From sequence record OP953026.1: a stretch of DNA of 64,000 nucleotides; one strand, written 5' to 3'. Under the pieces are notes generated by a model. That model was not told where the DNA came from. It did not search any database and saw only the letters and a program-made list of their open reading frames with translations. Shown here in pieces: positions 1 to 18,128 of this stretch. Numbering within the stretch: position 1 is the first letter of the stretch; each line of letters begins with the position of its first letter. A program made the translations under genes and the position numbers.

Positions 1-32
1 AGCTTCACTATTGAAAAGCTACTTGTATAATA

Positions 33-50
33 AGAGCCCTTCGGGGCTCT
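33..50 (+). terminator. intrinsic terminator hairpin
   Basis: AGAGCCC-TTCG-GGGCTCT followed by T-rich tract. Confidence 0.85.
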
Positions 51-80
51 TTCTATTTCGCAATTAGGTATCTGTATTAA

Positions 81-515
81 ATGGATAAGTATCCTATTCT
101 ACAAGCTATGTCTAAAGAAGAGGCATTTAGACTTTTAGACATACAAGGTGAGTTTAGAAAAACTCAAATGAAAGAAAGGTATTGGAATGAGGAAACTGGT
201 CTATGGTGGTGGGAACAACATCCCGATGTGAAATTAAGGATAGTTGCCGCCTGCAATAGATGGAAGGATGTTTATTTCATTGCAGCGAGGCATTCATCAA
301 TCATAATGACTCAACAACAGCTAATGTATGGTGGTCTTAAGGTATTGCATGAATATGCAGGAGATGATCATGAACAAGGTTTTATTGATCAGTATGAAAA
401 CTTCCACTCTAGGGAAGAAGCAGTAATTATCGCTAAGAATAATAATCAGTTATATCGAGCTGAATTAGAAAATAGATTAGTAACTAAATATTTATTTAGT
501 GAAGACCTATATTAG
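81..515 (+). CDS. conserved phage hypothetical protein
   Basis: 144 aa ORF; RH and EQGFIDQ..FxSREEA..IA...LFSEDLY motif recalled from phage hypothetical proteins. Confidence 0.8.
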   Translation: MDKYPILQAMSKEEAFRLLDIQGEFRKTQMKERYWNEETGLWWWEQHPDVKLRIVAACNRWKDVYFIAARHSSIIMTQQQLMYGGLKVLHEYAGDDHEQGFIDQYENFHSREEAVIIAKNNNQLYRAELENRLVTKYLFSEDLY

Positions 516-545
516 GTTTCCAATAATTTAAATAGGAATATAGCT

Positions 546-1202
546 ATGCTAATGAATGAAATTATCGATATTCTAGAAGGAGGGAAAGAGAATATTCTCT
601 TAACTAACCATCTAGGTAATGGCAAATATTCCAATGCGGGTAATGCAATGGCTGCATCATATGCCATTGCGGCACATACTGCTGTTGGTCAATTGCGAGA
701 TGGTTCAGGAAAACCTTACTGGCATCATTTATTACAAGTAGCTGAGATGGCGCAATTATTCGACCTATCTCACGCTGCTTATAAAGCAGCATGGTTACAT
801 GATGTAATTGAGGATACTGCTGTAACTGCTTCTGATCTAACTAAACTATTCTCAATCCCTGTTGTTAATTTAGTAACTGAACTAACAAATGTAACTTACG
901 AAGGTAATCGTAAAACTAGGATTAGTTTACAACATGAAAGACTTTCTCGCATTTCATGGAGTGGTCAATCTCTTAAGTTACTAGATTCCATTTCAAACAT
1001 GTGGTCGATTGTTAATGATAAGCCTGATTTTGCTGAACTGTATCTGACTGAGAAAGCTCAACTAATCAGTAAGTTAAATAATTGTCACCCCGCTATTAAA
1101 GATCTGGCTATATCTGTTCTCTATGGCAGGTGTACTATGGTTGGTGGGGATGCACTAAAAGAATATAATAAACTATTTTCTGATAATGAAATTGTATGTT
1201 AA
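546..1202 (+). CDS. RelA/SpoT-type HD domain protein (small alarmone hydrolase / MESH1-like)
   Basis: AH..Q.R..SGKPY..H, AAWLHDVIEDT and LKLLD..SN motifs; no synthetase domain. Confidence 0.85.
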   Translation: MLMNEIIDILEGGKENILLTNHLGNGKYSNAGNAMAASYAIAAHTAVGQLRDGSGKPYWHHLLQVAEMAQLFDLSHAAYKAAWLHDVIEDTAVTASDLTKLFSIPVVNLVTELTNVTYEGNRKTRISLQHERLSRISWSGQSLKLLDSISNMWSIVNDKPDFAELYLTEKAQLISKLNNCHPAIKDLAISVLYGRCTMVGGDALKEYNKLFSDNEIVC

Positions 1203-1220
1203 AATAATTACTTAATATAC

Positions 1221-1240
1221 ACCCTCCCTTCGGGGAGGGT
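1221..1240 (+). terminator. intrinsic terminator
   Basis: ACCCTCCC-TTCG-GGGAGGGT plus TTTT. Confidence 0.9.
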
Positions 1241-1279
1241 TTTATTTATCTTTTTTTGTATTTAAACTATTTAAAAAGC

Positions 1280-1287
1280 TATATTAC
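1280..1287 (+). promoter_or_regulatory. phiKZ-type early promoter
   Basis: TATATTAC after TTTAAA elements, upstream of RBS and ORF. Confidence 0.85.
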
Positions 1288-1320
1288 AAATATGAATTTA
1301 ATAACCAAGAGGGCAATACA

Positions 1321-1584
1321 ATGACTGAACGTTTGAAATCCGTATGGTGCGCTTGCAGCTTACTGCGTGAACGCTGGAGACACATCCAAGACATTGCTGT
1401 CGGGGATGAACATCATGTCATAGTAAAAAACGATATGCTGATGGTGTTTCGTGGTCAAGTACCGGTAGGTAGCATGTACCGGGGTGACAGTGACCCACTC
1501 ATCTACGAGGGTGGTGCACTGGAAGAATTTACTAAAGTTGTATTGGATTTAGAATTCAATACTCGTGGTGAAACCAATAGTTAA
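1321..1584 (+). CDS. early hypothetical protein
   Basis: 87 aa, GAGGG RBS, first gene after early promoter. Confidence 0.8.
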   Translation: MTERLKSVWCACSLLRERWRHIQDIAVGDEHHVIVKNDMLMVFRGQVPVGSMYRGDSDPLIYEGGALEEFTKVVLDLEFNTRGETNS

Positions 1585-1610
1585 TAAAATTAATTTTGAG
1601 GTAATTCATT

Positions 1611-2018
1611 ATGAAATATGTAATTGCATTTATGTTGTCTATTGTAACTATCACTGCTAACTCGGCTGTCATGTACACTAATCGTGATTCATGCATCGAG
1701 TTTGTAAAACAGGCAGATGAATTGTTTGTAAAAGGTGCATCTGTAACTGAAGTGCAAATGAAGACTTATGAAAGGATTCATTATATCCTTAATAACACTA
1801 AAGATCTAAAGACCAACCAGTCTAAAGTTGAAGAACTCACTGGTCTATTTTACCTATGGTCTAAGGTAGATAAAATGGCAATTGAGGCAAGTTTGCCACG
1901 TGCAACAAATGCTGCTAAAGTCTATAAGACCACTCCTGAGAAATTCATCATTGATGGTTATTTCCAGCGTTGTGTAGCGGCAGGTGCGTTTGAAGCAAAA
2001 CCACTTACTCTAAAATAA
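1611..2018 (+). CDS. secreted two-Cys helical protein (paralog 1)
   Basis: signal peptide ending ANS-A; Cys near N-terminus (RDSC) and C-terminus (QRCV); GAGGT RBS. Confidence 0.85.
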   Translation: MKYVIAFMLSIVTITANSAVMYTNRDSCIEFVKQADELFVKGASVTEVQMKTYERIHYILNNTKDLKTNQSKVEELTGLFYLWSKVDKMAIEASLPRATNAAKVYKTTPEKFIIDGYFQRCVAAGAFEAKPLTLK

Positions 2019-2030
2019 TGGAGGTACAAC

Positions 2031-2390
2031 ATGCTTAAGAATTGGCTATTATTCCTTTTCCTGCCAATCCTGTCCATTGCATGTCAGCCTGCCCACGCTG
2101 TAGAAGTGGGTATTACTAAGAAATCATGTAATGTGGCAGTAAATCTTTCACAAAAAGCAACTGAGCTTTATGATAAGAACCTATCCCAATTTGAGATAAT
2201 GATGCAGTTAGACATGATCTCTCGTAAGGATATGGATGACTTAGAGTTCTATGCAGGTACCGTATATGCTAAATTAAACTTAGTTGATATTCGCGTAAAT
2301 AAACGAAAAGGATTTACCAATGGAGCTATTCTAGATAGGCTAGCTGAAAACTGTGTTGAAGCAATTGGTACTAAATTTAACTTGGAGTAG
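2031..2390 (+). CDS. secreted two-Cys helical protein (paralog 2)
   Basis: signal peptide ending AHA; TKKSC ... ENCVEAIG. Confidence 0.85.
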   Translation: MLKNWLLFLFLPILSIACQPAHAVEVGITKKSCNVAVNLSQKATELYDKNLSQFEIMMQLDMISRKDMDDLEFYAGTVYAKLNLVDIRVNKRKGFTNGAILDRLAENCVEAIGTKFNLE

Positions 2391-2393
2391 AAT

Positions 2394-3188
2394 ATGGTTA
2401 GTATTTATATTGTCATTATACTCATGGCTATGCTAGCTGCATTGACATGTGGTAATTTGGTAGATAGCTGGGTAAGGCCAGCTATTCTAAAGTGGTTAAA
2501 TGATGATGTCGCTATTCATTTCACCAATGCTACCTGGATGGTTGGGGGGATCCCTAATAGTGTTCCAATGCAACTAGGTAAAGCTGTTTGGTTACCCAAA
2601 TACGTGGGTGACGGAATACGTCTTTATATCACGGCTGATGAAATAAAATTTGGATGGAATGGTAAAGAAAAAGATGCTTTAGCACGAGCCATTGTTGAAG
2701 TTATCTTTATTGGTAAAAATCCAAATAGTAAACTTCTTGAAGTAAGTATTAAACCTATTTGGTTACACCCTTCTATCCAAAAAGAAAGTTTCTATTTAAT
2801 GTTTGATTGGGAAAAGCTTTATACAAAAAATGAAGAGATGCGTATTTGTTGGAAGACAATACGTCACACTTTTTTCTATGGATTCCTAGGTTTGCTATTT
2901 GGCGGTAGTGCCAATGCAGATAACCTTGTATTAACTGAACGTGGATGTGACCAATATGAAGCAATGGTGAGAACTATTGCATCTAAAGCTTATATTGGAT
3001 TAGATCCAGTTATGGGTAGGGAATTCATTATTAATGATCCTGATATGTTAAATGCCCGTGAGAAAGCACAACGTAATACCCGTATCATTATCGATATGGT
3101 GGAAACTGGACAAGAACCCAAAGACATTGCATTATGGATGAATACTCAATGTAAACAAGAAGCAGTGTCAAATTTAATCAAACAGTGA
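2394..3188 (+). CDS. two-TM membrane protein with C-terminal two-Cys domain (paralog 3); possible gp241-position gene
   Basis: N-terminal TM, internal signal-like segment ending SANA, TERGC ... TQCK; internal ATG at 2838. Confidence 0.75.
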   Translation: MVSIYIVIILMAMLAALTCGNLVDSWVRPAILKWLNDDVAIHFTNATWMVGGIPNSVPMQLGKAVWLPKYVGDGIRLYITADEIKFGWNGKEKDALARAIVEVIFIGKNPNSKLLEVSIKPIWLHPSIQKESFYLMFDWEKLYTKNEEMRICWKTIRHTFFYGFLGLLFGGSANADNLVLTERGCDQYEAMVRTIASKAYIGLDPVMGREFIINDPDMLNAREKAQRNTRIIIDMVETGQEPKDIALWMNTQCKQEAVSNLIKQ

Positions 3189-3201
3189 AAAAGGCATAGA
3201 T

Positions 3202-3585
3202 ATGAAAAGAAATTTTGAAGATGATCACGTGGTAATGGCAGTGGAAGTATATGAGAAACTGAAAGAAGCTGCTGCTTATTCATTACACTCTTCTGAAATT
3301 AGTAAGATCGAACGACATATGCGTAAGTTTAATCGTGTTCAACGCGATAAACATATTGAAAATATGCATATGGAAATGCTTGAGAAACGCGAGGCTATTA
3401 GAAAAGCAAAATCTTTCTTTTCTCAAAATGCCGGTAAAATTGGTTGCGTAGTAGATAGGCTTGTCAAAGTATGTGAAGTGTATAAAATGGATAAGTCTAT
3501 GGTGGTTGTTGAGTTTCTCCAACATAAATCTAAAATTAAAGTTCCAGTAAATCCTGAAAAAATTACTATTCTTACCATTAAATAA
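3202..3585 (+). CDS. hypothetical protein
   Basis: 127 aa ORF in operon. Confidence 0.8.
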   Translation: MKRNFEDDHVVMAVEVYEKLKEAAAYSLHSSEISKIERHMRKFNRVQRDKHIENMHMEMLEKREAIRKAKSFFSQNAGKIGCVVDRLVKVCEVYKMDKSMVVVEFLQHKSKIKVPVNPEKITILTIK

Positions 3586-3602
3586 ATGAAGAAGGATTTA
3601 AA

Positions 3603-4058
3603 ATGAAAAATGTAATTGCAGCAGCTTTCGCTGGTCTCATTGCCATTACCGGTATCATGTTCAATACCGCAATGGCTGAAATCAAGATTGGTAAAAAAGA
3701 TGCTCAACTCACTGTGCAGTCGTGTGCAATGGTTGAAACCATTACTAAACAAGCTGTATTTCGAATGAGTGAAGGTCATAGCGCAGATGAAGTTGGTGTG
3801 CTTATGCTCAACAACTCTGCTAAACTCAAAGATGAGTTGGATACCAATAATTGGATTGCGTTAACATTCGTATTCAATAGTCTTAATAAAATCAATAATG
3901 ACCTTAACAGTAAAGAGATCCATGATTATATCCGTAGTCAAGGTTACAATGTGACTACTCCTAATCTGGCAGCTTTTATCAGCGGGTATTATGGCAATTA
4001 CTGCATGAAGCATATTGGTGAGAAATTCACTCACATGGTAATTGTTGAACTCATTTAA
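3603..4058 (+). CDS. secreted two-Cys helical protein (paralog 4)
   Basis: signal peptide ending AMA; TVQSC ... NYCMKHIGEK. Confidence 0.85.
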   Translation: MKNVIAAAFAGLIAITGIMFNTAMAEIKIGKKDAQLTVQSCAMVETITKQAVFRMSEGHSADEVGVLMLNNSAKLKDELDTNNWIALTFVFNSLNKINNDLNSKEIHDYIRSQGYNVTTPNLAAFISGYYGNYCMKHIGEKFTHMVIVELI

Positions 4059-4090
4059 TTCATATCGAATACTTTCAAAAGGAAAATAGG

Positions 4091-4468
4091 ATGAAATACG
4101 TCTTCTCGCTCATTATCACTATGGTAGCAATGTCGGTTAATGCACAACCCGTAACCGTGTCATCTTGCTACGTGCTGCACAGCTTGGCAAAGAATATGGT
4201 TCAATTCTACACTAATGGCGGTGAGCCATTGGAGATGTATGCAATACTGCAAGATGAACTATCCATTGCCATAGATAAAAACCAGAGTGATAAGGCACTC
4301 GCTATTAATATCGCATTGGATAATGTCGATGTAATATACCAAAATCTCACTGATCCCGCACTTAAGCTTTTGGCAAAGAGCGAGGGAAGTGATCTTGGTG
4401 AGATGCTGACTGAAAAACTCAGTAATGGGTGTTTCAATATAGTCGGCGAGGAGTTGTATGATAACTAG
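4091..4468 (+). CDS. secreted two-Cys helical protein (paralog 5)
   Basis: signal peptide ending VNA; TVSSC ... NGCFNIVGEE. Confidence 0.85.
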   Translation: MKYVFSLIITMVAMSVNAQPVTVSSCYVLHSLAKNMVQFYTNGGEPLEMYAILQDELSIAIDKNQSDKALAINIALDNVDVIYQNLTDPALKLLAKSEGSDLGEMLTEKLSNGCFNIVGEELYDN

Positions 4469-4697
4469 AATCATCCTAATTGTTGCATGGGTATGGGTAA
4501 TCTCTCTTATGGGAATGATTACGTATGTTCTTTATGATACGTATCAATTTCGTAAGAAATTAGAAATGCCTGTTGTAGAATGGGAAGATAAGGCGAAGGA
4601 CACTCCTGTTAAGAAGTGTCCAGATGAAGTATTATTCGCTGAAGACCCAAAGGATGGCAAACTCAAAATGGGATGCCCTGAGAGTTATAAGAAATAA
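4458..4697 (+). CDS. small membrane-anchored protein with Cys pair
   Basis: N-terminal TM helix; two Cys in C-terminal part; GGAG RBS. Confidence 0.8.
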   Translation: MITRIILIVAWVWVISLMGMITYVLYDTYQFRKKLEMPVVEWEDKAKDTPVKKCPDEVLFAEDPKDGKLKMGCPESYKK

Positions 4698-4700
4698 TTA

Positions 4701-4718
4701 GAGGACCTTCGGGTCCTC
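4701..4718 (+). terminator. intrinsic terminator
   Basis: GAGGACC-TTCG-GGTCCTC plus T-run. Confidence 0.9.
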
Positions 4719-4779
4719 TTTTTAACCGACTGGACGGTTAAAACTAGGTGGGATAAATTAAACTATTTGAGGAAATCTA

Positions 4780-4887
4780 ATGCAACTTAGTAATGAACTT
4801 TTCTATGTGGGTATGGTAGCTGTATCAATGTCAATCGGTATGCTATTTAGCTATATTTACCACACTCATAAGAAAAAATATAAATAA
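4780..4887 (+). CDS. 35 aa single-TM peptide (not in ORF track)
   Basis: GAGGA RBS; [35 protein letters not shown]. Confidence 0.65.
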
Positions 4888-4896
4888 AGTCATAAA

Positions 4897-4916
4897 CCCT
4901 CTCCCAAAGGAGAGGG
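4897..4916 (+). terminator. intrinsic terminator
   Basis: CCCTCTCC-CAAA-GGAGAGGG. Confidence 0.8.
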
Positions 4917-4943
4917 CTTTTACATTAAATTTTTTTTGAAATC

Positions 4944-4951
4944 TATATTAC
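4944..4951 (+). promoter_or_regulatory. early promoter
   Basis: TATATTAC. Confidence 0.75.
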
Positions 4952-4990
4952 ACTAATACAACATTAAACTATTAAATAGGTAATTAAAAA

Positions 4991-5365
4991 ATGAATGAAA
5001 ATATTAAACGCTCATTTATTGGTATGCCACTGTCTATCAATATTGGTAAAGATATTGATTTATCAATGTATGAACGAATTGTATTTGTATCACAAGTAGA
5101 TAAAAATGATATAAAATACTTTGTTTATAAATTAAATAAATCCAAATTTAAACATGAACCAAATGTAGTTAATTACGCCGAAACAGATAAGGATATTATT
5201 ATTTATCCCCCGCTTGATTTCATTCAGACAATTAATGAATATTATCGAGTATCATTGGAAAATGAATTTATGTGTCATCCTGTTATTCTAAAAGCAGATG
5301 ATAGTAATAATCAAGAAGTATTTTTGAAAACTATTAAAATGGTACATGAGTATGTCGATGAATAA
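4991..5365 (+). CDS. hypothetical protein
   Basis: 124 aa ORF after promoter, AGGT RBS. Confidence 0.8.
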   Translation: MNENIKRSFIGMPLSINIGKDIDLSMYERIVFVSQVDKNDIKYFVYKLNKSKFKHEPNVVNYAETDKDIIIYPPLDFIQTINEYYRVSLENEFMCHPVILKADDSNNQEVFLKTIKMVHEYVDE

Positions 5366-5813
5366 CTGCGCATTTATTAATTTAAGGCAACGTTTAGTTA
5401 ATGATAAACTAACCTATGTGATTCATCCCATAGTGAAGGTTTATGATTTCACTAGAAAGGCTATTAGACAATTAACTGATTTTGCTATTTTAGATAGTTA
5501 TAACTTCCCAGAGGAAACTTCCAATATTAGTGTTCAGCCAACTATCACAGATGATACTAATAATAGAAATTCTTTGATACATCTTGGGGTTATAGAAGAG
5601 CCTGATTTTGGACCAACTAGATTATACGCCATCTTAGATAGAGAAATCAAAGATGATTCTAATCTAATTGAAACAACTGATGATGGCTGGTATACATTGG
5701 ATGAGTTAATTCTAGTTGAAGACGATATGGATGAATTCGCGCGACTTATTGTTCAGTACTTGCGAACTATTCCGAGGAAGCCACAATGGTTAACTTCGAC
5801 AAAAGATGTTTAG
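5346..5813 (+). CDS. degenerate NUDIX-like protein (tentative)
   Basis: ITDD.N....IHLGV...GWYTLDEL...DEFARLI resembles the COG4112-type NUDIX C-terminal pattern; no intact Nudix box. Confidence 0.4.
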   Translation: MSMSMNNCAFINLRQRLVNDKLTYVIHPIVKVYDFTRKAIRQLTDFAILDSYNFPEETSNISVQPTITDDTNNRNSLIHLGVIEEPDFGPTRLYAILDREIKDDSNLIETTDDGWYTLDELILVEDDMDEFARLIVQYLRTIPRKPQWLTSTKDV

Positions 5814-6016
5814 AAATAGAGCCTAATCAGTTAGGTTATGTATTTACAAAGATCGGTTGGGAAATATGTGTTACTATTGGCATACGACATATATGTGCTA
5901 AAACCTATTATACAGTGTATTCACTTAATGATAAATGCATTTATTACATTGAGCATTCAGCGCAATTTACTAAACGCATAAAACCAAACTATATACAAAG
6001 GTTTCATGTTCTATGA
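5786..6016 (+). CDS. hypothetical protein
   Basis: 76 aa ORF, ATGA overlap with next gene. Confidence 0.6.
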   Translation: MVNFDKRCLEIEPNQLGYVFTKIGWEICVTIGIRHICAKTYYTVYSLNDKCIYYIEHSAQFTKRIKPNYIQRFHVL

Positions 6017-7120: not shown

Positions 7121-7555
7121 ATGGCTGATATAGTAATTGCACTAATCCTGTCAGCAATTATTGTTTATCTAATTAATATTTTTAAACACCCAAAAATAAT
7201 TTATGCCAATAGTGTAAATGATAATGTCTTCATTGTTACTGGTTGCTCTTATATATCTGAAAATAATGAAGATGGTACATTAACAACTTTTTCACCTAAA
7301 TTAAATAATAGGTTAATAATTGATTTAACTAAAGGTCAACCCAATAAAGACTTTTATATTTCAGTATTAGATAACACACTTAAATTCCATCACACTGTTG
7401 ATGAAATTATCACAGCTAATAAATGGGAAGCTTTATTTAAAATTAGCATAACTAAAGAGGATGTGTGTATCTCAGGAATACCTCTTAAAAATAAAAATAT
7501 AAAATGTAATTTACACTGGGTTATAGCACCAAGTAAAATGGTGAATAAATTGTAA
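7121..7555 (+). CDS. membrane-anchored hypothetical protein
   Basis: N-terminal hydrophobic helix. Confidence 0.75.
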   Translation: MADIVIALILSAIIVYLINIFKHPKIIYANSVNDNVFIVTGCSYISENNEDGTLTTFSPKLNNRLIIDLTKGQPNKDFYISVLDNTLKFHHTVDEIITANKWEALFKISITKEDVCISGIPLKNKNIKCNLHWVIAPSKMVNKL

Positions 7556-17242: not shown

Positions 17243-17755
17243 ATGGCAAAAACACTCCGTGTAGTACGTGTCCGTGATGGGATCGTTGATAGTCTTAATA
17301 ACGATGGTCTATGGGTTAACAAACATACCTTTTGTATGGAAGAGGTATGGGAAGCCCACAAACAAACAACCCAATTCCAGTCTTACAACTGGGGGACTAT
17401 GTACTTCGTTAGTGAAAATGATGTAGCATGTAATCCATATCCTCATCATCAATACCGTGAAGTATGGATCTGTCAACGAGGTGTGCAACAAAAACTAGAA
17501 CTATGTGAGGATTTAGAATCCGGTATAGTTGGGGATGATCATGTTGTAGTTATTATGACTACCACGGATGGATTAGATTATAGTTTTGTGAGTGGTGTGT
17601 ATGGCGACCGTATTAACTACAGTCCTTACTATGGTGATGCCATTTCTATACCTTGTACCAATAATCAAGAAGCAGACGATGTCTATCATATTCTAGCTAA
17701 AATGGCTAATGGCATAAGTCTATCTGTTCCTCTAGTAATGAAGCTGATTAAATAA
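17243..17755 (+). CDS. hypothetical protein
   Basis: 170 aa, AGGA RBS. Confidence 0.8.
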   Translation: MAKTLRVVRVRDGIVDSLNNDGLWVNKHTFCMEEVWEAHKQTTQFQSYNWGTMYFVSENDVACNPYPHHQYREVWICQRGVQQKLELCEDLESGIVGDDHVVVIMTTTDGLDYSFVSGVYGDRINYSPYYGDAISIPCTNNQEADDVYHILAKMANGISLSVPLVMKLIK

Positions 17756-17762
17756 AGGAGTA

Positions 17763-18128
17763 ATGATTATGGATTATAAATGGCATGATAAGTTCATTAT
17801 AGAAATTATTAGTAAAAGTTGTAAAAAAGATGGAATTGGTAAAAGTTACTTAGTGCGTAAAGATTGGAGAGATGTTAATCAGCGTGATTACGCCATTCTA
17901 TCACGTATTGGTTTCCATGATGCTCTTTTGCTTGATGAACATGAAGTCGAATACTATTTGAACAATGTAGCATTTGATATCGCAAAGGCCGTATGGGAGT
18001 CTGAAGGTAAACCAAAAGATACTGATATGCATATTCGGGCATTGCGCGTAGATATGGATAGCCTATCTAATAGATTCAAGATATATACTGATATAAAACT
18101 AGATATGGATAAGCACCGGAAATCGTAA
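17763..18128 (+). CDS. hypothetical protein
   Basis: 121 aa, AAGGAG RBS. Confidence 0.8.
   Translation: MIMDYKWHDKFIIEIISKSCKKDGIGKSYLVRKDWRDVNQRDYAILSRIGFHDALLLDEHEVEYYLNNVAFDIAKAVWESEGKPKDTDMHIRALRVDMDSLSNRFKIYTDIKLDMDKHRKS

Follow-up and report, generated by a model that had tools for sequence, protein, structure and literature searches.

Bacteriophage T4 encodes two early superinfection-exclusion membrane proteins, Imm and Sp, that are small, dispensable, and located in the inner membrane or periplasm. A precedent of another kind is the cytochrome b-c1 precursor FbcH of Bradyrhizobium, in which a membrane N-part is followed by an internal cleaved signal that exports and releases the C-part. 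Two further types of protein come from jumbo phages. One comprises gp248, gp251, and gp252 of phiKZ together with gp303 of PhiPA3, all of them small helical two-Cys proteins with Sec signals. The other is represented by PhiPA3 gp314 and HPP-Temi CDS0094, in which an uncharged N-terminal tail and a transmembrane (TM) helix with a positive flank precede a beta domain of about 110 residues. phiKZ is a leading model phage, and its studied early biology is mostly cytoplasmic (the infection vesicle and the nucleus).

Here we describe gp249 of phiKZ, which has features of both jumbo-phage types in a single polypeptide. The window, a 64,000-nucleotide stretch of sequence record OP953026.1, comes from a phiKZ-type Pseudomonas jumbo phage, and its position 1 is base 239079 of the phiKZ reference. 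An open reading frame at 2394–3188 on the plus strand (264 aa plus stop) maps onto PHIKZ249 (241472–242266 in the phiKZ reference), whose annotation consists of a locus tag and the label hypothetical protein. The likeness of gp249 to gp248, gp251, and gp252 lies in membership of the same operon, a signal of n/h/c design with small residues at positions −3 and −1, an all-helical domain behind the signal, and the placement of two Cys residues, the first roughly 10 residues after the start of the mature part and the second roughly 12 residues before its end. In contrast to these proteins, whose signals are N-terminal, gp249 has an internal signal, and its C-domain is 89 aa long compared with 96–126 aa and is without their C-terminal Cys-x3-[IV]-G. 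gp249 resembles PhiPA3 gp314 and HPP-Temi CDS0094 in the run of elements from N-tail to beta domain, whereas these two proteins end after that domain, with no second hydrophobic segment and no periplasmic module. For the gp247–gp253 set, the likeness to T4 Imm and Sp is one of timing and location only, and the relation is by analogy. FbcH and gp249 are unrelated proteins, and cleavage of gp249 is only predicted. We lean, if only slightly, toward reading gp249 as an accessory inner-membrane protein of two modules.

Conservation and dispensability of gp249

A 3.2-kb query around gp249 matches 47 phage records at identities of at least 99%, and tblastn returns one ungapped 264-residue match to gp249 in each of 47 phiKZ-type records. 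Apart from these, the protein is found only in two diverged lineages, referred to here by their loci as L002 and L004. The L002 counterpart (P0002) is 71% identical to gp249, syntenic, and fused. The L004 counterpart (P0004, 252 aa) is 30% identical (E = 1.8e-30) and full-length, covering gp249 residues 1–254, and its gene adjoins that of a gp248 homologue; the contig, 195 kb in length, is from a metagenomic jumbo phage. The fused build of gp249 is kept down to this 30% identity. Comparison of gp249 with L002 gives a pS of 0.71 (near saturation) and a pN of 0.17; dN/dS is about 0.09, with no deviation at the hinge between the two parts. gp249 is one genuine selected gene, with an intact open reading frame and purifying selection along its full length.

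In PHROGs, gp249 matches its own family only (PHROG 22383, unknown function), and a Pfam scan of the protein returned no match. Scanning window positions 1–6000 against Rfam gave no RNA family, a DNA repeat search of the stretch found no repeat involving the hinge and none that was meaningful, and the antisense open reading frames in the gp249 region are short and unsupported. Two protein fragments filed at NCBI as Klebsiella pneumoniae hypothetical proteins (P0012 and P0013) are 89–91% identical to the gp249 C-domain. They lie on contigs of 248–310 nt and probably represent phiKZ-like DNA carried over into Klebsiella assemblies.

Published transposon data bear on the need for the gene. In the phiKZ TnSeq screen, where essential genes have single or double digits, 33 insertion sites are recorded for PHIKZ249, with 9,540 reads; it follows that phiKZ can do without gp249 when grown on PAO1 in the laboratory. 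In the same screen, insertions are tolerated in every gene of the gp246.1–gp253 unit.

The gp246.1–gp253 transcription unit

The unit that contains gp249 has eight genes, in the order gp246.1, gp247, gp248, gp249, gp250, gp251, gp252, and gp253. Ahead of it, an intrinsic terminator hairpin on the plus strand (1221–1240; an 8-bp stem with six GC pairs and a T-run) ends the gp245–gp246 unit, and a TATATTAC promoter motif on the same strand (1280–1287) follows an AT-rich stretch at the likely start of the gp246.1–gp253 unit. TATATTAC has been listed as a phiKZ promoter motif (PMC7058600 Table 2). A second plus-strand hairpin at 4700–4719, right after gp253, terminates the unit. One RNA-seq contig, from run X19, has its start at 1303, and another, from run X20, ends at 4724, straight into Illumina adapter; these ends fit a transcript of about 3.4 kb, which contigs cannot prove. 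We take TATATTAC to be the early promoter of the phage. A two-TM holin was considered as an identity for gp249 and rejected because the gene sits behind this presumably early motif and not in the lysis cassette, which in phiKZ is gp141–144 with gp142 as the holin (PMC12894885).

Four products of the unit, gp247, gp248, gp251, and gp252, each carry an N-terminal signal peptide and two Cys residues, and gp253 has an N-terminal TM helix. The gene directly upstream of gp249 encodes the secreted two-Cys helical protein gp248 (2031–2390, plus strand), and this adjacency is kept in L004, which also has a gp251-like gene and a gp253 homologue. Members of the gp248 family occur in 63 phage records, including those of PhiPA3, Phabio, Psa21, and PS119XW. 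When mature domains were compared with hhalign, gp251 matched gp252 (90%, E = 1.5e-6) and gp248 matched gp251 (58%, E = 1e-4); these three are the only secreted proteins of the unit whose kinship the profile tests bear out.

Several side observations concern the neighbors of gp249. The first codons of gp247 (1604–1628) and gp251 (3596–3620), encoding MKYVIA and MKNVIA, are 84% identical in DNA over 25 nt and may be the trace of a duplication; the mature part of gp247 matches no neighbor by profile. Cys18 of gp248 (2082–2084) begins a Cys-Gln-Pro motif, placed where the signal core ends (IAC-QP, VGC-QP), that is kept in the gp248 homologues of L002 (2414–2773) and PhiPA3 (17697–18047 of locus L007), and the L004 homologue is without that Cys. 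The motif raises the possibility that gp248 and the two homologues that keep it are lipoproteins and not soluble proteins of the periplasm. In PhiPA3, the 470-bp gap after gene 303, the gp248 homologue, holds an unannotated 54-aa open reading frame (L007 18207–18371; 263206–263370 of the PhiPA3 record) that encodes a TM helix and, after it, two Cys residues, and that looks like the counterpart of phiKZ gp253. gp253 itself (window 4458–4697; L004 10673–10942) has an N-terminal TM helix, a Glu-Trp-Glu-Asp motif, and two Cys residues, and it closes the unit in both phages. At L004 5183–7189, an NAD-dependent DNA ligase (668 aa) is encoded between a gp246-like HD hydrolase and the gp248–gp249 pair, a position that in phiKZ is occupied by gp246.1 and gp247 only. 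Positions 1627 and 2213 of the window are C, whereas all four RNA-seq runs, from four studies, have T; these are probably strain differences between the window phage and laboratory phiKZ stocks.

Relation to the Juk activator gp241

A first-pass annotation of this DNA had proposed, by counting genes, that the open reading frame at 2394–3188 sits near phiKZ gp241 and may be the trigger of the Juk defense. The published Juk screen recovered an insertion in orf241 only, and gp241 is the JukAB activator. The two genes are not the same, and the placement was off: gp241 (236899–237228 in the phiKZ reference) lies before the start of the window, and gp249 follows eight genes (4.2 kb) downstream; in functional terms the two are not neighbors. 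Between them are gp242–gp248, terminators at window positions 32–51 and 1221–1240, and the promoter motif at 1280. gp241 and gp249 do have the phage, the strand, an early-type region, and dispensability in the laboratory in common. However, gp241 is a 109-aa protein from a separate part of the genome, and BLASTP of gp249 against it gave no similarity (best E = 11), a result that the annotation had itself named as speaking against the link.

The A6 hinge and the stability of the fusion

The same annotation had seen a possible switch in the run of six A residues at 2825–2830 (plus strand; codons ACA AAA AAT), with fused and split genes alternating as natural variants, through phase variation, or as the result of a sequencing error. 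The arithmetic behind this idea is correct. One extra A would produce ACA AAA AAA TGA, and an ATG that opens a signal peptide lies 4 nt downstream of the new stop; the sequence A AAA AAT is also similar to a heptamer of the −1 slippery type. The annotation had itself named an invariant run as the outcome that would speak against a switch, and the 71 nt around the run (2796–2866) show 100% identity across all 47 genome records. In contigs assembled from four RNA-seq runs, each of a different study, the region has neither an inserted nor a missing base, although contigs may hide rare variants. Among the diverged relatives the run is absent: L002 has GAAGCTAAT in its place, L004 has yet another sequence, and both keep the fused frame. 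A run of six A is, moreover, short for slippage. We conclude that the A6 run is not a variable tract.

A split gene would yield a 116-aa stand-alone C-part, and no such form appeared when 5.8 billion protein clusters were searched with the gp249 C-part; the search returned only fragments from contigs of 224–310 nt. An exhaustive profile search gave the same result for both parts of gp249, with contig-edge fragments as the only matches besides the full-length relatives. That search also matched P0006, a 603-aa protein of about eight near-identical repeats, to the hydrophobic hinge only (E = 3.7e-6), a match that we take to be a composition artefact and not a relative. Alternation between fused and split forms at the A6 run, together with a Juk-trigger role, is in our judgment very improbable.

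Two other mechanisms at the hinge were considered and rejected. Translation from an internal start at M149 is not credible as the main route because the purines AAGAG abut ATG 2838 without usable ribosome-binding spacing, a feature that also counts against the split gene, and because they weaken to GAAGAA in L002. A counterpart of this ATG is not conserved in L004, whose hinge contains no in-frame start codon; the L004 C-module is therefore made only within the fusion. Programmed −1 frameshifting on A AAA AAT was set aside because the heptamer is not conserved in L002 or L004. The picture is of a fusion between what appear from modeling to be two modules that is an old, fixed event, neither recent nor reversible. 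gp249 is an annotated hypothetical gene with an unusual yet stable build.

Architecture and fold relatives

The elements that the first-pass annotation had picked out, namely a first TM helix, a middle domain, an internal ATG at 2838 with a signal-like segment ending in SANA, and a two-Cys domain, are all present in the sequence. Within the gp249 coding sequence, all on the plus strand, TM1 (2394–2462, residues 1–23) is very hydrophobic and has no charge ahead of it. The middle domain, residues 24–148, holds a beta-sandwich of about 105 aa (2502–2822, residues 37–143) that is indicated by the AF2 model (pLDDT 60–83) and by Foldseek and is predicted to be cytoplasmic. The internal signal-peptide-like segment (2838–2918, residues 149–175) runs from M149 to ANA175 and is followed by D176, the first residue of the C-terminal helical domain (2919–3185, residues 176–264, 89 aa), which is predicted to be periplasmic. 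Cys185 (2946–2948) and Cys253 (3150–3152) of this domain are kept in all three lineages; the conserved Cys pair is confined to it, and the beta-sandwich has no conserved Cys.

An AF2 model of gp249 built from six sequences has a mean pLDDT of 62.9 and places a beta-sandwich at residues 39–141 (block means 60–83) and a helical bundle at 182–263 (60–80). In a Foldseek search of predicted viral structures, the top non-self matches are small jumbo-phage proteins. Ranks 2–5 are held by four proteins of 137–169 aa with E values of 6e-6 to 1e-3 and probability 1.0, of which the build was checked for gp314 only. A0A4D6BI27 (140 aa) matches with E = 6e-6 and a TM score of 0.63, and PhiPA3 gp314 (144 aa) with E = 1.5e-5, probability 1.0, and a TM score, normalized to the length of the target, of 0.55. 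Matches also come from Phabio, Psa21, PS119XW, and 201phi2-1. PhiPA3 gp303, an all-helical homologue of gp248 (38.9% identity, E = 1e-15), has a TM score of 0.59 and probability 1.0 at E = 0.019, with the aligned range not reported, and a 113-aa protein of 201phi2-1 has a TM score of 0.60, again with no range; both are small helical bundles, matched by a gp249 model of middling confidence. Foldseek prints no aligned ranges, and the assignment of these targets to modules of gp249 is taken from their own composition. gp314 consists of a TM helix and a beta-rich domain only, so that any counterpart of it in gp249 must be the N-part; gp303 is all-helical and should for that reason correspond to the signal and C-domain.

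The first-pass annotation had described gp249 as a fusion to one secreted paralog. The two-module build and the fold matches to gp303 and gp314 bear out part of this description, but paralogy to the neighboring proteins finds no backing in sequence or profile comparisons. Pairwise searches of the gp249 C-domain against the neighbors were blank, and hhalign gave at most 5%, out of register and no better than an N-domain control. Sequence similarity of gp249 to PhiPA3 gp314 or HPP-Temi CDS0094 was likewise not detected by profile comparison. The TM plus beta-rich protein gp259 of phiKZ (7121–7555) was tried as a paralogue of the N-module and rejected, with both BLASTP and an N-module HMM blank.

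Outside the phages, Foldseek against the PDB gave nothing at E ≤ 0.001, a sequence profile search of the PDB gave only the myoferlin C2 domain (E = 0.28), and a wide structural search with gp249 was filled by generic two-helix hairpins. Residues 32–144 align to C2 beta-sandwiches (Itch, dysferlin, intersectin, myoferlin) over 79–92 residues with Z scores of 3.0–4.0, which is within the range of any beta-sandwich. Residues 184–251 match caenopore-5 (Z = 5.9, rmsd 2.6 over 68 residues) within the helical-bundle background. Both fold leads are weak, not strong enough to build on. A saposin-like fold for the C-domain was rejected; gp249 has one Cys pair only, compared with the three conserved disulfides of that fold.

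Topology

TM1 is preceded by an N-tail of three uncharged residues. The flank directly before the second hydrophobic segment has three to five Lys or Arg residues in all three lineages (net charge +2 to +3 in two of them and 0 in L002), and the flank after this segment is neutral to acidic (net 0 to −2). After TM1, the flank is positive in L004, and in the fold relatives it is positive too (R and K in gp314, a K/R run in HPP-Temi CDS0094). The positive-inside topology proposed earlier (N-out, cytoplasmic domain, C-out) accords with the Lys and Arg residues before TM2 in three lineages and after TM1 in L004. These charge flanks, together with a Cys pair that occurs only in the C-domain, favor an arrangement with the N-terminus out, the beta-sandwich in, and the C-domain out. 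As far as charge and Cys placement can tell, the cytoplasm most likely holds the beta-sandwich, and the periplasm the N-terminus and C-domain.

The orientation of TM1 is not clear-cut in phiKZ, where the flank after it has a net charge of −1, as in L002. This charge, along with a second segment that is only marginally hydrophobic, would suit a protein in which TM1 is an N-in anchor or is cleaved off as a signal and all that follows, beta-sandwich and second segment included, is periplasmic. However, the Lys and Arg residues that all lineages have ahead of the second segment, the strongly positive flank after the TM helix of the stand-alone fold relatives and the positive one in L004, and the lack of a conserved Cys pair in the beta-sandwich all argue against such a protein, and we regard it as improbable.

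With the N-out topology that we prefer, TM1 would insert with its short uncharged N-terminus facing outward, and the beta-sandwich (37–143) would stay in the cytoplasm. The internal signal-like segment (149–175) would then re-cross the membrane and export the helical domain (176–264), in which Cys185 and Cys253 could form a disulfide in the periplasm.

Possible processing of the internal segment

The internal segment has the make-up of a signal peptidase I substrate: a positive n-region (R150, K154, R157), an h-region within the usual 10–15 residues (an apolar core of 13), and a polar c-region (G-G-S-A-N-A) with small residues at −3 and −1 ahead of D176. It shares its build with the N-terminal signals of gp247, gp248, gp251, and gp252, which have small −3 and −1 residues and a similar core length, and its core is less hydrophobic than theirs. 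ANA-D176 follows the same pattern as AHA, AMA, and VNA of the neighboring signal peptides. The n/h/c segment is conserved in the L002 and L004 counterparts, and the c-regions after the core read ANA, ANA, and SAS in the three lineages, each before DN. The core is short, small or helix-breaking residues come after it, and the −3 and −1 residues are small in three lineages, and it is for these reasons that we lean toward cleavage. Signal peptidase I probably cuts gp249 after A175, with the qualification that conservation of the motif is drawn from only three diverged lineages and is weak evidence.

Cleavage at this site would release an 89-aa periplasmic protein resembling the mature products of the neighboring genes and leave behind a membrane-anchored cytoplasmic beta-sandwich. 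It is conceivable, and we put it forward tentatively, that gp249 is a polyprotein-like precursor from which the host signal peptidase frees a disulfide-stapled periplasmic effector while the beta-sandwich stays tethered on the cytoplasmic face, as part of an early envelope program.

The main rival to cleavage is an uncleaved hairpin. Were the second hydrophobic segment a permanent TM helix, gp249 would remain whole as a tether or transmembrane signaling module linking its periplasmic and cytoplasmic domains; a signaling module is what the first-pass annotation had suggested. The AF2 model packs helices 4–35 and 147–168 as an antiparallel pair, most structural matches over residues 1–172 are helical hairpins of membrane proteins, and a need for physical linkage would most readily account for the long-kept fusion. 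Against such a helix stand a core of only 13 apolar residues, a poor predicted insertion energy on the Hessa scale (+6 to +7 over 19-residue windows, with TM1 at −2.7), and c-regions that in each of the three lineages are of the kind seen in cleaved signal peptides. A permanent hairpin is a possibility that we consider doubtful.

The two-module inner-membrane reading that we favor also has points against it beyond the small number of lineages and the charge after TM1. The AF2 model on which it draws is middling, with both TM helices below a pLDDT of 50, and no profile comparison joins either module to its proposed relatives.

Implications for a possible early envelope program in phiKZ

What gp249 does with its neighbors is open to a guess. 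By analogy, gp249 together with gp247, gp248, gp251, gp252, and gp253 may serve early envelope modification, for example superinfection exclusion or protection from an envelope-level defense or attack. This guess is drawn from the promoter motif, the location of the proteins, their dispensability, and the analogy with T4 Imm and Sp, and from nothing else. In the papers that we searched, no mention was found of an operon behind the phiKZ promoter motif whose products would place five domains in the periplasm. By its predicted topology, gp249 alone in the unit would have a cytoplasmic domain as well.

The remaining significance of gp249 is modest once the switch and the Juk link fall, and with neither in place gp249 should not guide work on Juk. 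The gene is nevertheless a ready handle on the role of the unit because transposon mutants exist for every unit gene, and its predicted internal signal peptide is a cheap and clear-cut test case for the processing of phage membrane proteins. If gp249 is indeed a precursor, every round of translation would supply both sides of the inner membrane with one part apiece, and the protein would belong to a previously unrecognized early envelope program of nucleus-forming jumbo phages, for example one that excludes a second phage.
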